Below are positions 1,250-56,139 of a stretch of 64,000 bases of DNA, piece by piece. The stretch's first letter is position 1; every line of letters begins with the position of its first letter. The notes below the pieces were generated by a model that saw only the letters and a list, made by a program, of their open reading frames with translations, searched no databases and was not told where the DNA came from. The stretch is from Mobula hypostoma (Eukaryota), in the NCBI RefSeq assembly GCF_963921235.1, contig NC_086128.1, forward strand, positions 62,372,001-62,436,000, in the 5' to 3' direction. The position numbers and the translations under genes are program-made.

Positions 1250-1400
1250 GTCATGAAGAAATGCAATAAATTCCTTGTTGTTTTATGAAAATTTACAACT
1301 TTGTGATAGAACTTTATGAGTGAATCGGTCCTTCGATTGGCCGCTGCCGGTCATGTGGATAGCAACCGTGAGCATGAACTTTTTATGATTTCCCTTGTGA
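1250..1400 (+). promoter_or_regulatory. Conserved non-coding element between Hox7/8 and Hox6 (resembles the H8/7-6 four-cluster sequence), probably a distal promoter
   Basis: GCAATAAATTCCTTGTTGTTTTATGAAAATTTACAACTTTGTGATAGAACTTTATGAG with clustered TTTAT/TTTAC Hox/Cdx sites, followed by ATTGG (1336) and E-box CATGTG (1352). Recognised from memory as a conserved Hox intergenic block. Confidence 0.7.
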
Positions 1401-3005
1401 GTACATTGCAGCAGTCTTTTGGCCACCGTACCTTGGGTCGGTTCTGTGTCCTCCTCGGGGCTTCTATAGTGCTTTTTTTTTCAAACTTTNNNNNNNNNNN
1501 NNNNNNNNNNNNNNNNNNNNNNNNNNNNNNNNNNNNNNNNNNNNNNNNNNNNNNNNNNNNNNNNNNNNNNNNNNNNNNNNNNNNNNNNNNNNNNNNNNNN
1601 NNNNNNNNNNNNNNNNNNNNNNNNNNNNNNNNNNNNNNNNNNNNNNNNNNNNNNATTTCCCCCCCTTTTTTTTGCAAATCTGCCACTTGTCTGTCGGTTG
1701 GGAACCTCAGCGGTGGACTCTCGGTGGCGCAAACCTCAGTGATGTGGACGATATCATTTTTCAAAGAGGCTCCAGTTCCGAATTCCCGTGTACATGACAG
1801 AGCCATGAAGTCCCCCCCCCAACCCACTATCACCCACCCACCCACCCACCCACCACCAGTCTGCGGGTGCGGGGGCTAACCGACGGCTATCAGTTTGGGA
1901 CAATACTGTGCGTGACCAAAAAAAAATATCGCGCTGGTTTCAAAGTGAAATGGGGGAAAAACTCGAAACAAAATCACAGACAGCGAAAGGTAAGGTGAAC
2001 ATCAGCACTTTACAACTGGTATATATATATTTTAACATTCGGCTAAACAAACTGTGTGGAGCGTATCACCGGGGCAGGAAGATAGCCATAGAGGAAGCAT
2101 TTCGATATTTGTTGACGTCAGTTGGAGAATATCTTTGCTGTTTTTCTTTCTTTCTCTGATAAGGCTTTTTTTTTGGGGAGGGGGAGACTGTTGTATGAGG
2201 GTGCTGTGGAGGATGTTTCTTTAATTCAAATGGCAGACCTCAGCCTCTGGAGCTAATTTGGTTTCCGTTAGTCTTTCTGCGTTGGGTGTCTGCGGTGCAC
2301 AAGTAAGGCGTCGGCTGTAAGATGTAACAGTAGGAGAACTGACAAATCTGTGACTGTGCTCAGGGACGAACTCCGCTGTATGGCCATGTTAATTGGGTTT
2401 CGAGATAGTTTATCTATTTTTTTTTCTCGTGGGTCGCTCGATACGTAAACAGTTTTATCCCGAGCAGAGCAGGAAAGCGGGACAGTGTGACGCAGAGACG
2501 TATTATGATTGTGTTGTTCGTAGTGATATATAGATACAAGTATATTCTTCCTATTGTGCCTGATGGTTGTCAATAATTCGCACTGAGTCGGGAGACGGTG
2601 CCGGAGTTACAAATTCGTACCTTCATGCTGTGAGACAGATCTTTTATTTCTGTTTGGGTGCATTAAGGTATCGTCTTGCATCAACAGCGGATGGCTGTAA
2701 GACGATATAATGTACGATGGCGTTTAGGTCGCCGTGGTTTACAATGGTCCGCAAGCAAAGCCTGGTAGTTCTGCATTGGTAATATATAAGTCTACTCGGG
2801 AATTTTTTCCTCTCTCTCTCTCGCTGTTCTAGAGGGCGGGAGTGGGAGCAGCAGGGGCGGGGAGAAAGCATTTGTTGCTTAATACCGCCACCTTGCGTTC
2901 TCATGGACCTGCAGAAGTCGGAAAATTAAAGAGGCAGCAGGGAAGAAACTGTATCCGCAGAATTATTATTTCTTTTCTCTTTTTTTTTCCTGACCCCTCC
3001 CCTCA

Positions 3006-3041
3006 AACAACAACAACAACAACAACAACAACAACAACAAC
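3006..3041. repeat. (ACA)n microsatellite
   Basis: Directly visible, about 12 units. Confidence 0.95.
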
Positions 3042-3288
3042 GGAGCTGAGCTGAACAAAAGAAGCGCCGGCGCACGTGCATGGACGCGCGCGTGCGCGCG
3101 CTGGCGCGGATACATGCGAAAATTAAAAGGAAAGCGATTAAAATTAACCTTTTAGCTCTATATATTCGACTGCTAGCCCTCCGTGCATTTCAGAGGCAAA
3201 TTAATTACTCGCTTTCCTCCTATTTCTGACCCCCACCCCCCCTCAACAAAGGAGCAATTCCACGCCATGGAATAGAACTGAGCTCATG

Positions 3289-52414: not shown

Positions 52415-54659
52415 ATCTATATTGTTTTAATATCAAGGCCTGTGTATTTGTGTGCGTGTGTGTGTGTGGGGAGGGGGGGGGGATGTAATGTGTGAGTGGG
52501 TATACGGTAAGTATTCAATTATTACTTCTTACAAAACTACAGAATAAAGCACTTCTTCAGCTTGTAAATATCTTTATTACCAAACAAGGTCTAGAGACTT
52601 ACACAAACATTCAGGAATTAATGGGTAAAAACTTTCCATCCGGTGTAATGAGACACCACGTGGTGTCTGGGCAGAGCAGTCATTGGACCTGCAAGAGAAA
52701 CAAAGAAGAAACGCATGAGCTTCCTGCCAAAGTACACAGACCTTTCCAGCTCATTCCATTCAAAATGAAAGATTTTTTTTTCTTTCTCCTCTCTTGGCCT
52801 AGCAATCAACTGCTTTTAAAGTGATGTTATCAGACCAAGACATGCACGAATTTGTATGAGAAATTGATTTTTTTTAAACATTGGTGTGTCTATAAACCAT
52901 GGGAAACAATTGGAAGTGTAAACTGCCTTGAAAACAAATTTGAAAACTGTGTGTGTGTTTGCGCGCGTGTATGTGCGTGTGTGTGTTTCTGAAACGAAAA
53001 TTCGAATCAAATGCTTCTACGTGTTTGACAGCTTAACAATCCCAACAAAACTTTTTTTACGACGTTCTCTTTTTTAAATTAAGTTTATTGGATTTTATGA
53101 GTATCATAACGGAGCCCAGCCAGTCTTTTCATAACAAGCGCGCCAAACATTGCGATCAAAATCGCAACTCTGTAACAATAGCTTTCAGTTAGCTTATCAG
53201 CAGCCCATGGAAAGAAAATCCCAAAGTAAATCTAATTATCTAATCGCGTTTATTTTGAATTATTACGTCGAGTTTTTTTTAAATTTCTATGGACTGATTG
53301 TTTAGGAAGCAATAATGATTTTCTGTACTGTTATCTCATGGACCAAATAACATTCCGTGCTGAATTATAACAACAGAATATTAACTAATTTACGAGTCTG
53401 TATTTATCCCTCAAGGCAAGGATTCATTAATACTTCCGTTAAATGTTATGCCAGTAACACAACAATGAAATTTATGCTGGATTTAGATATGAAGGCGACA
53501 AGAATTAGAGTCAGTTATAAGTTCGGATATTCAATTAAATATTACTGATAACCGATTTAATGTGTACTTAACTAAGGTGAAAACAAAATGTTGTCATTGG
53601 CGAATTTTGCAAAACCTTGGTAATATATTTATTTTAAAACCTTCCCATGCCTGCTGGTAACAATATGAAAGACCAAGCCCCTCCAATCATTTCTTAATTG
53701 TATATTCTGCGATGTGCACCATTTAAAAGAGAAAGCACCAATTCTGCGCGAAAGTTTTCCTAGATCGTTTAACAACTCTCCAGGGTCTTGCAAACACAAT
53801 TTTGCAGCTGATGTCAACTAGTGCAAGAAGGGGGGAGAAAAAAGGGTGCGGCGCCATATTGTTCGATTTTCGACCCCTCGCCGTCCAGAGAGAGAGAGAG
53901 AGAAAAAATATCATTCACCCCGCGGAAAAAAAAATTAAACCTGGTCTTTGATAGCAACTTGCAGAAATGTTTTGATTATCCCGCATTCCTCGGATCTCAA
54001 GTGTAAATTAACCAGTCTGCTAATATCCAACAAGCATTCTCTTTATTGAGCTGTTGGGCGCTGCTTTAAATCTGTGCAATGCGTTACAGATTTGTCTGTA
54101 GCGCTATTTCATATCGGATTCAATTACAAATGTGTATATAGCAAAGCACGGGAAGGCAATCTGTGCACAAAAACGGTATCAAATAAACGACAGAAGTTAT
54201 CTTAGCTATTGCATTTTAACTCGTCGAATCTTTCGGGCAATTTGCTGTTATTTATATTACAGGCATTTCAAAAGCAGGACTACGCATAATTTTAACACGC
54301 GCACAAGGAAAAATAAATTCGCAGCCATCAATTCAAAACAAAACGACACGCCATGATACAGCCTTTTTCTCACGTCATATTTTAACCAATTATTCCTCGG
54401 TCTATGGTCTCTGAGCAACTCCCCACACCGCAGCCATCAGCAACGCGGGCCACAATTATTGTTAATTTCAGCGGTCATGTTTGGCGCATTAAAGAATATT
54501 TTATCTCTGAGCACTTTCTTGCTGAATTAAGAATAGATTTCTTCGCGGCAGGGCCGTTTCAGTGTTGCGGCGTCCTGTGAGGGGCCGCGCTTAAATACTT
54601 GCACCCCCGCACACGCTCTAAGAAACAAAGGTTTCAAGACCCCATTTTTTTTTTACCAA

Positions 54660-55045
54660 TTCATTTCACGTCCCACACAGTGTGCACGAGGAGGAATTGG
54701 GAACCGACACAAGGCTTTGGGATACATTTCACGCCCAAAAGATAGGGCCCTCATTCGGTCGTATTTTTATTTTTATTTTTTTTATTTTGCTTTAGCCGCT
54801 TTGCCAGGGATTTGCAACAAAAAAAAGTTGGCCCGTTTTGTTATTTATATAGGTCGGTGCTGGCGTCTTTGGGTTTAAAAATAAATGCTTTTCATCGCCC
54901 CCCTTTTTTTTTCTTTAAGAAAGGATGGTCAGAAAGGAGAGCCTGGTCGACTTCCTGGCATTTGATATGGGAAGGCGAATTCTTCAGTGTGCTCTCAAAC
55001 CGAAGCTGTCAAGCTGTTCTGTGGCCAAAGATTGATCGCGGCTGT
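54660..55045 (+). promoter_or_regulatory. Hox2 hindbrain / neural-crest enhancer (Krox20 + Box, Meis + Pbx/Hox)
   Basis: CCCACAC Krox20-like site (~54672), GACACAAGG Box-like motif (~54706), Meis CTGTCA (55006-55011) and Pbx/Hox AGATTGATCG (55029-55038), the signature of the Hoxb2 r4 element. Confidence 0.75.
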
Positions 55046-56139
55046 CCTCAGTTCCTTGAGTTTATCTCTTTTTTTTTAAAAAAAAGGTGTCCATTGTAAC
55101 ACTAATGTCGGTCACACTGAAATAGTTTCTGTATAATGTGCTCTGTTCACGTAATCACACATGCATTTTCAATAAACTTTCCTACTTTCAAACTTGTTTT
55201 TTTTATTATTTTAAGAAAATCGTGCCAATTCAACCCCCCTTTTTTAATTTGAAAAAAAAAGACACTTAAATCTATCTATAAAGTTTGGGTAGAGGGGTCG
55301 GATGCGTGAATTGGGGGGAAATAGGTTCATAAACAGAAAGGGAAACTCTGCGAGATTTGGGGGGCTAGACGAGGAGATGAAATTGGTTAAAATAGTTAAC
55401 TCAACAGTTTATCGCCACTGGCAGCCTTATTCAGAGTTAAAAGCCAATACTTACCTAGCTTCGGAAAGCCCTTCTGTGCTTTGCAAAGCTACCACAGAAC
55501 TGCTAAATCCATTCGACCACGGGATAAGACACACTTTGTGACTTGAGTCTAATGAATCTGATATTTAAAGGGATGGACTTTTACCGACTGGGCCTGCAGC
55601 AACTGCCTGGCCGATCCCGTGAAAGTTCCATTTTGTCACTGGCCCCTGTTGTCAAAACTTTGAAGATTAATGAGGCAGCCTGTTAATTACTCAAGTCGCC
55701 AGATTTTAGGTGCAAATCTTCTTCACTTGAATTGCAAAATACTGAGATGTAATTGGGAGAGATAACTCCCCCCCAAATTAAAAAAAAAACCTCTCAACGT
55801 CCAATCTCCAAAATAAAATGACACGGCACAATTAAAAGTGGCGGTGTATAAGGGTAAATTTAAAATTCTGACTTGATAAAATAAAGTGGATTTTTTTTCT
55901 TCACTTTTTTTTAATCAATTGCAGAGATAATGGTTCCTTTTCATTAGACACCAAATTGCCATTGGGTAACGCCAATCATGTGACAACGGATTCGGTCCAA
56001 TTTCAATCTAGACCTCAGATTAATAGAGCCGGTCCCCATACGCCTTGTAATATCAGAGATGCAGAATTAAAGCCTGAAAATATATATATTTCACGACCTA
56101 TAATATTCATAACTTTCTCCATTCGCCATTAAGAAGGCC

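Follow-up and report, generated by a model that had tools for sequence, protein, structure and literature searches.

The 64,000-nt stretch of the Mobula hypostoma genome analyzed here (contig NC_086128.1, positions 62,372,001 to 62,436,000, hereafter the window) carries, at each of its five Hox genes and at two sites between genes, a CCAAT-like box followed at a fixed distance by an E-box. With a probability of roughly 0.7, seven conserved promoters for RNA polymerase II have this pair as their core and share one strand and one spacing; five of them were compared across species. Five would be the proximal promoters of HoxB6, B5, B4, B3 and B2, and two would be ancient intergenic promoters, at positions 1336 and 14419. 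The promoter at 1336, 3′ of HoxB7, would be the HoxB counterpart of mouse Hoxa D2, the start of long Hoxa6/Hoxa5 transcripts. The promoter at 14419 would fire both ways, with a sense exon at about 14516-14673 whose transcript passes over mir-10 and HoxB4 to position 31196, and an antisense exon at 14322-14217 joined to position 6010. The sense transcript resembles zebrafish hoxb3a splv2 and could serve as mir-10 host.

The pattern A[TC]TGG-N10..12-CANNTG was scanned over both strands of the entire window and gave nine matches on the plus strand and one on the minus strand. Eight of the nine had been listed in a first-pass annotation, and all eight are present on the plus strand with the positions, spacers and E-box letters given there; the ninth, at 29303, was missing from that list. 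The sole minus-strand match, at 48962, uses the same CACGTG as site 48927 at HoxB3. A comparison with shuffled sequence, also proposed in the first-pass annotation, was carried out with 500 dinucleotide-preserving shuffles in which the gaps were kept in place. These gave a mean of 1.72 matches per strand (standard deviation 1.28, maximum 7), and none reached the observed nine. When the E-box was narrowed to CAYRTG, seven matches were observed versus 0.31 expected (shuffle maximum 3). A histogram of spacings from N = 0 to 40 on the plus strand showed three, four and two matches at N = 10, 11 and 12, respectively, and zero to two elsewhere; the histograms of the three other relative orientations were flat. 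The fixed spacing and fixed orientation of an NF-Y/USF composite were thus found in the window, and spacer length is constant for each position in orthologs and paralogs.

Judged by its coding sequence, the window covers HoxB6 to HoxB2 of a myliobatiform ray. It has five plus-strand homeobox exons, in the order Hox6, 5, 4, 3, 2, and the first exons begin at the start codons listed in Table 1. The first exon of HoxB5 is 88% identical to Mustelus HoxB5 and 83% to Callorhinchus HoxB5, that of HoxB4 is 99% identical to Mobula birostris HoxB4, and that of HoxB6 is 80% identical to Callorhinchus HoxB6. Homeobox order and identity to named HoxB exons thus bear out the gene labels B6 to B2 used earlier. 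HoxB7 is not inside the window.

That the pair marks every gene also held: five sites lie 98-179 nt upstream of the start codons of B6, B5, B4, B3 and B2. For comparison, loci from other, non-human vertebrates were fetched around HoxB5, B4 and B6; the comparison took in sites 1336, B6, B5, 14419, 25520, B4 and 29303. The B5 composite is 21/21 identical in bowfin, alligator and turtle, and its counterpart at tinamou A5, ACTGGACAACAAAAGCACGTG, is 20/21 identical to ray B5. The B6 composite is conserved in B6 of the same three species, and the tinamou A6 counterpart reads ATTGG-N12-CAGCTG. At B4, the composite (ATTGG...TGTCACATG, N10) is conserved in B4 of zebra shark and turtle, and B4-type composites are present in the paralogs bowfin D4 (ATTGGCTCCTGCGGTCACATG) and alligator C4 (ATTGGCCCAGGCGGTCACATG). 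At HoxB3, CCAAT boxes flank the CACGTG symmetrically, so this composite can be read on both strands. A TATA-like TATAATT lies at 10716, downstream of the HoxB5 composite.

These alignments suggest that each paralogy group compared (6, 5 and 4) has its own variant of the composite, fixed before the Hox clusters separated. Because position-specific variants are common to HoxA, B, C and D, they would be older than the cluster duplications. The earlier description of the sites as serially homologous was not demonstrated, since different positions have only the short motif in common. A wider similarity between positions was looked for and rejected; in the B5 promoter versus the block 3′ of HoxB5, for example, only the motif letters match.

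Some further features were seen near these promoters. A perfect CArG box (CCATATTTGG) lies at 10670-10679, 18 nt past the HoxB5 E-box, and a CArG box likewise follows the E-box of the tinamou HoxA5 promoter (locus L006, about 13780). About 20 nt past the HoxB4 E-box, at 27276-27282, stands TTGACAG, a PREP/MEIS-type site; the promoters of turtle B4 and bowfin D4 have kept it as well. The TATA-like region at about 56080-56110 before HoxB2 (ATATATATTTCACGACCTATAATA) resembles that at 14486-14512, 3′ of HoxB5 (ATATATTTCACATTCTGTATAATG), which may be coincidence. Tinamou HoxA has two extra plus-strand matches to the pattern, at L006 8322 and 8653, which fall between A6 and the post-A7 block, and bowfin HoxD has another at L007 4317, 5.7 kb upstream of D4.

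Site 14419, for which the start of a long spliced or non-coding Hox transcript had been predicted, is probably the core of a bidirectional promoter, and it is a conserved intergenic element 3′ of HoxB5. Bowfin, alligator and turtle all have the motif with 22/22 letters unchanged, at a distance of 1.6-2 kb on the 3′ side of HoxB5. In tinamou HoxA, an equivalent block whose motif matches at 20/22 positions lies 1.6 kb 3′ of A5, and in bowfin HoxD an equivalent block 5213 nt upstream of D4 carries the variant AATGG-N11-CACGTG (L007:4788). The conserved block of about 200 nt around the ray motif contains TTTTATGG at 14457, TTGACAA at 14475 and a TATA-like ATATATTT at 14488.

Four public runs, from two studies and two organisms, supplied contigs that were placed on positions 12645-18644. 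Their canonical splice junctions indicate that the contigs derive from RNA, the run type itself being a guess. The sense exon is covered by record 22 of run X3 (14516-14673) and by record 12 of run X2 (14406-14673). Its plus-strand GT-AG junction, 14673 to 31196, is present in contigs of two runs from two studies and defines an intron of 16.5 kb that encloses mir-10 and the entire HoxB4 gene. The GTAAGT donor is conserved in HoxB of alligator, turtle and bowfin and in bird HoxA. The prediction of a transcript start at 14419 was thus borne out by a first exon 3′ of Hox5 that is spliced past mir-10 and Hox4 to sequence 3′ of Hox4, together with a divergent antisense exon. Contigs of the antisense exon occur in all four runs, and contigs from two studies carry canonical GT-AG junctions, the minus-strand one leading from 14217 to 6010; the loose end of the X5 contig corresponds to window positions 5981-6010, and the transcript spans HoxB5 and HoxB6. 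One X2 antisense contig enters sequencing adapter past 14312, which marks the end of the molecule there. RNA coverage of 14323-14405 was found in none of the four runs. The same-species sense contig begins at 14516, 28 nt past the conserved TATA-like box at 14488 and 76 nt past the E-box. This contig start would place the motif at about -97 to -76 relative to the sense start and about 100 nt from the antisense end.

Other observations concern the same region. Further antisense acceptors in two runs fall outside the readable part of the window. A second antisense RNA on the minus strand joins sequence antisense to HoxB4 exon 1 (27450) to 17234 through a canonical GT-AG intron, in contigs of three runs; its terminal exon, at about 17233-16588, lies about 10 kb away, with a 1-nt ambiguity at the junction. 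The alternative that the 17234/27451 junction is a sense splice into HoxB4 exon 1 is excluded by the canonical GT-AG intron on the minus strand. The HoxB5 and post-HoxB5 promoters share an unusual ACTGG...AAAAG(T)CACGTG form, and on this ground either may be a duplicate of the other.

Site 1336 lies in a conserved non-coding block (Table 1) that aligns to turtle DNA 2.6 kb 3′ of HoxB7 with 83% identity over 252 nt (E 4e-62), and a 75-nt stretch of the block is 100% identical in turtle. The turtle HoxB ortholog of the motif is ATTGGCCAGAGCCGGTCATGTG (L005:3185). In tinamou HoxA, an equivalent block 2.3 kb 3′ of A7 carries ATTGGTCCTCGTCGGTCATGTG (L006:5974), and a related block is found in bowfin HoxD (L007:335). 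A block at the position of mouse D2 is thus conserved in turtle HoxB and bird HoxA, the latter cluster having the same four-element series of post-A7, A6, A5 and post-A5. The ray block holds TTTATG (Cdx/Hox-like) sites and, at 1380, a TATA-like TTTTTATGA, which by its position would place a transcription start near 1410, right before a gap. The extra start predicted at 1336 is therefore backed by homology, through the paralogous HoxA block at the D2 position, and the ray block would most simply be the HoxB paralog of mouse Hoxa D2. A relic of HoxB7 after 1336 was considered and excluded, because the window has five homeoboxes only, and in turtle the counterpart of the block is intergenic sequence located 3′ of a B7 gene that is intact.

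All motif instances are clear of runs of N, the closest approach being that between the motif end at 1357 and the gap starting at 1490, which conceals the sequence downstream of site 1336. Other gaps begin at 11748, 13075, 15869 and 23858. The distance from the HoxB5 ATG to 14419 is 3622 nt in the ray versus 3399-3969 nt in turtle, alligator and bowfin. The assembled order and strand across these four gaps agree with this distance and with the single-strand RNA junction 14673 to 31196. Among the contigs placed on 12645-18644, none bridges a gap. RNA contigs of two runs extend from 13074 into the gap at 13075-13217, which points to a transcribed HoxB5 3′ region there.

Table 1. Positions of the paired motif and of associated features in the window.
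Feature	Position	Strand	Details
Site 1336, core of putative post-Hox7 distal promoter block	1336..1357	+	ATTGG-N11-CATGTG
Conserved non-coding block around 1336	1217..1462	+	133 nt from motif to gap 1490-1654
HoxB6 proximal composite	6626..6648	+	ATTGG-N12-CAGATG, ATTGGTCAG...GATCAGATG; 138 nt before ATG 6764
HoxB5 proximal composite	10632..10652	+	ACTGG-N10-CACGTG, ACTGGTCAACAAAAGCACGTG; 165 nt before ATG 10797
First exon of divergent antisense RNA	14322-14217	-	donor G/GTAAGT at 14217, joined to acceptor 6010 (ttgcag/)
Conserved block of about 200 nt around 14419	14345..14535	+	alignments to HoxB, bird HoxA and bowfin HoxD
Site 14419, centre of probable bidirectional promoter	14419..14440	+	ACTGG-N11-CACGTG
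First exon of long sense transcript	14516..14673, 5′ limit approximate	+	donor AA/GTAAGT at 14673/14674
Composite upstream of mir-10	25520..25542	+	ATTGG-N12-CACGTG; about 275 nt upstream of hairpin
mir-10 precursor hairpin	25818..25893	+	Rfam RF00104, 78.7 bits (threshold 47.5), E 2.3e-18, full-length model
HoxB4 proximal composite	27236..27256	+	ATTGGCT-...-GTCACATG, N10; 132 nt before ATG 27368
Ninth match	29303..29324	+	ACTGG-N11-CATTTG, 0.9 kb 3′ of HoxB4
Start of downstream sense exon	31196..31225	+	acceptor ...ccaacag/CAAATC
HoxB3 proximal composite, mirrored	48927..48962	both	ATTGG-N10-CACGTG-N10-CCAAT; 98 nt before ATG 49025
HoxB2 proximal composite	55961..55982	+	ATTGG-N11-CATGTG; 179 nt before ATG 56140

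The binding of NF-Y and USF to such a pair has a precedent in human HOXB4, which the first-pass annotation had invoked. Mutation of ATTGGCT in a 99-bp HOXB4 promoter cuts activity by 60-90% and mutation of CACGTG by 90-98%, and USF1/2 bind and activate via the E-box (PMC2193192). NF-Y was described in a complex with USF on this promoter (as cited in PMC3675019). Genome-wide, the CCAAT/CACGTG spacing for USF and MAX is 10-12 bp and orientation-specific (PMC3730095, PMC4889920), and a USF-specific region contacts NF-Y across the CCAAT/E-box distance (bioRxiv 10.64898/2026.02.16.706105). The precedent was apt, since the ray motif matches both the human ATTGGCT/E-box pair and the 10-12 bp rule. 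Ray B4 shares order, strand and gene-proximal position with the human elements HxRE-1 (ATTGGCT, NF-Y) and HxRE-2 (CACGTG, USF1/2), and the heptamer at 27236 is identical. The ray B4 E-box lies 112-117 nt before the ATG, and human HxRE-2 is numbered -129 to -149, with the reference point unstated in the accessible text. The E-box is CACATG in ray, shark and turtle B4, bowfin D4 and alligator C4, whereas human HOXB4 has CACGTG, and the binding and reporter data are from mammals only. The genome-wide NF-Y/USF (MAX) composite (Fleming 2013; Dolfini 2016) shares with the ray pair the 10-12 nt spacing, the E-box located 5′ of CCAAT on the CCAAT strand, and the use in promoters. Unlike the genome-wide composite, two of the seven ray elements have CCAGT instead of CCAAT and one has a non-USF E-box, and in the ray an entire gene cluster is marked by the composite, whose position-specific variants have persisted for more than 450 million years.

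The letters of the two boxes determine where this precedent can be applied. An intact CCAAT is found at 1336, B6, B4, B3, B2 and 25520, CCAGT at B5 and 14419, and CCATT in the HoxD paralog. The E-box is CACGTG at B5, 14419, B3 and 25520, CATGTG or CACATG at 1336, B4 and B2, and CAGATG at B6. NF-Y requires an intact CCAAT. The earlier term inverted CCAAT therefore holds for 1336, B6, B4, B3 and B2, and does not hold for B5 and 14419, where CCAGT is perfectly conserved; the assignment of a USF-type E-box likewise fails at B6, whose CAGATG is a non-USF site. NF-Y/USF appears to be the best reading at B4, B3, B2 and 1336 and is uncertain at the others. Where it applies, an NF-Y trimer on CCAAT and a USF-type basic helix-loop-helix (bHLH) dimer would sit side by side, about one helical turn apart. 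Their mutual contact would open or activate the promoter, as mutagenesis indicates for human HOXB4.

The two intergenic sites resemble known starts of long Hox transcripts. The mouse D2 start of long Hoxa5/Hoxa6 transcripts was mapped by 5′-RACE to a position 2.3 kb 3′ of Hoxa7, within a 160-bp block that is highly conserved, contains a TATA box and has promoter activity in transgenic reporters (PMC2868907). Mouse Hoxa D2 (Coulombe et al. 2010) and, to judge from its turtle and bird counterparts, ray 1336 would both lie 2-3 kb 3′ of Hox7 in a conserved block of about 160-250 nt, with a TATA-like box nearby and the sense direction toward Hox6/Hox5, and the ray block can be aligned with its paralog in bird HoxA. 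They differ in that the ray block is in HoxB and D2 is in HoxA with a mapped start, and the published description of D2 is without the CCAAT/E-box pair. For site 14419, the parallel is zebrafish hoxb3a splv2 (BK005082), which begins on the 3′ side of hoxb5a, includes exons 3′ of hoxb4a, carries miR-10c in its primary transcript and extends across miR-10c, hoxb4a and hoxb3a (PMC2148072, PMC3185001). In both transcripts a first exon just 3′ of Hox5 skips Hox4 and an intronic mir-10 and is joined to exons that lie between Hox4 and Hox3. The bowfin HoxD copy, 5.2 kb upstream of D4, is placed like mouse Hoxd4 P2, the promoter of the pri-miR-10b host. The divergent antisense partner and the motif core are seen in the ray and not in the accessible descriptions of splv2 and Hoxd4 P2. 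The ray antisense RNA resembles human HOXB-AS3 in layout, both being spliced, antisense and overlapping Hox5 and Hox6 of the B cluster; HOXB-AS3 has several start sites, and in the ray one junction was seen.

A chance origin, in which short degenerate words with a chosen spacing were fitted afterwards in motif mining, is hardly credible. The pattern, with A[TC]TGG, any CANNTG and N10-12, was indeed built post hoc, which inflates the nominal significance; about 1.7 matches per strand are expected by chance, and two of the nine matches (25520 and 29303) are not conserved. Against this stand the shuffle results, with both the full pattern and the stricter E-box, and the sharp, strand-specific spacing peak. 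For 1336, B6, B5, 14419 and B4, moreover, six further species and three further clusters have the pair letter for letter at orthologous or paralogous positions, and this cross-species conservation removes the post hoc concern for the conserved sites. For the match at 29303, neither the shark nor the turtle HoxB4 locus has a counterpart; it was for this reason rejected as a post-HoxB4 promoter and is probably a chance match. Site 25520, the third predicted start, raises a separate question, since the feature downstream of it is the mir-10 hairpin, which the first-pass annotation did not mention. The hairpin lies between HoxB5 and HoxB4, and the sense transcript with its start near 14516 encloses it in an intron. 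It aligns with its near flanks in zebra shark and turtle, unlike the 25520 motif, which is absent in the aligned sequence of both; the shark has ATTGT and is without the E-box. An ancient mir-10 promoter at 25520 was rejected on this ground, and the predicted start there is not supported. A dedicated, ray-specific pri-mir-10 promoter is unlikely, although the site carries a canonical ATTGG and CACGTG at N12, a TATA-like TATTTAAA follows at 25576, and the hairpin is close by on the same strand. About 0.2-0.3 matches of this strict type are expected by chance per window. In mouse, what had been taken for a promoter adjacent to mir-10b was an end left by Drosha cleavage, the promoter that produces pri-mir-10 being located upstream (PMC3185001); in the ray, mir-10 sits in an intron of the transcript starting at 14419. 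The expected number of chance matches and the origin of pri-mir-10 from upstream promoters make a dedicated ancient promoter at 25520 unlikely, and from the alignments the site would be lineage-specific or a chance match outside the conserved set.

Several points weigh against the promoter reading with NF-Y and USF. Contig ends cannot fix transcription starts, and the starts are approximate, because one contig of the second organism begins at 14406 and continues across the motif. The equation of 1336 with D2, and of 14419 with the splv2 start or Hoxd4 P2, would rest on position and paralogy, not on alignment. CCAGT at B5, 14419 and the HoxA paralogs and CCATT in the HoxD paralog mean that another factor may read the first box, CAGATG at B6 and CAGCTG at A6 are non-USF sites, and B4, B2 and 1336 carry CAYRTG variants instead of CACGTG, which also fit MITF/TFE-type factors. 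It is rather unlikely, though not far-fetched, that factors other than NF-Y/USF read the pair and that the common spacing reflects a different complex, with NFI on TGGC, MITF/TFE or MAX on TCAYGTGA, class-A bHLH factors on CAGATG and a further factor on ACTGG as candidates. The replacement of CCAAT at B5, A5 and the post-5 elements is perfectly conserved, most E-boxes in the window have a 5′ T, and in the HOXB4 work ATTGGCT was initially interpreted as a site for NF1, and in vitro the E-box was bound by MITF (PMC2193192). However, the functional HOXB4 activators are USF1/2 and, later, NF-Y (PMC2193192, PMC3675019), the spacing and relative orientation exactly fit the NF-Y/USF rule (PMC3730095, PMC4889920), and the GGTCAC(G/A)TG flanks suit USF. 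It is quite improbable that the blocks at 1336 and 14419 are mainly Cdx/Hox/TALE-responsive enhancers that set the boundaries of neighboring Hox genes, with the transcripts as by-products and the pair as an accessory. Both blocks do hold perfectly conserved TTTATG/TTTTATGG and TTGACA-type sites beside the pair, bidirectional transcription is typical of enhancers too, and PMC2148072 describes shared enhancers as dense in Hox intergenic regions. By contrast, the sense RNA uses a splice donor that HoxA and HoxB have both conserved, and it continues in a defined exon at a distance of 16.5 kb; a TATA-like box precedes the start of the sense contig by 28 nt, and in the paralogous mouse D2 block a start was mapped by 5′-RACE and promoter activity was seen with a reporter (PMC2868907). 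Enhancer and promoter roles are, moreover, not mutually exclusive.

Parts of this picture are already published: the pair at HOXB4 and the rule for its spacing, the promoters D2 and P2, and, among transcripts, the long one of zebrafish and antisense Hox RNAs. In the literature, which was incompletely accessible, we found no description of a spacing-locked pair at every promoter of paralogy groups 2-6 and at both distal promoters, of position-specific variants common to the A, B, C and D clusters, or of RNA evidence for a post-Hox5 bidirectional promoter in a ray. The whole finding is a well-supported extension of known biology. We tentatively consider it possible that the CCAAT-like/E-box pair was an ancestral Hox core-promoter cassette, with position variants already present in the single pre-duplication vertebrate cluster and with the orphan promoters 3′ of Hox7 and Hox5 equally ancient. 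If true, Hox transcription in long polycistronic units and in antisense units, the mir-10 host among them, would be ancestral and selected, not noise.

The conserved CCAGT raises the question of whether NF-Y is tolerant of this box when held by a bHLH partner or is replaced by another factor. The promoters mouse Hoxa D2, zebrafish hoxb3a splv2 and mouse Hoxd4 P2 would become one ancient family across HoxA, B and D. The pair also offers a simple sequence rule for Hox transcript starts, including the poorly annotated distal promoters of polycistronic, antisense and mir-10 host transcripts, and this rule is usable for Hox cluster annotation in newly sequenced vertebrates.

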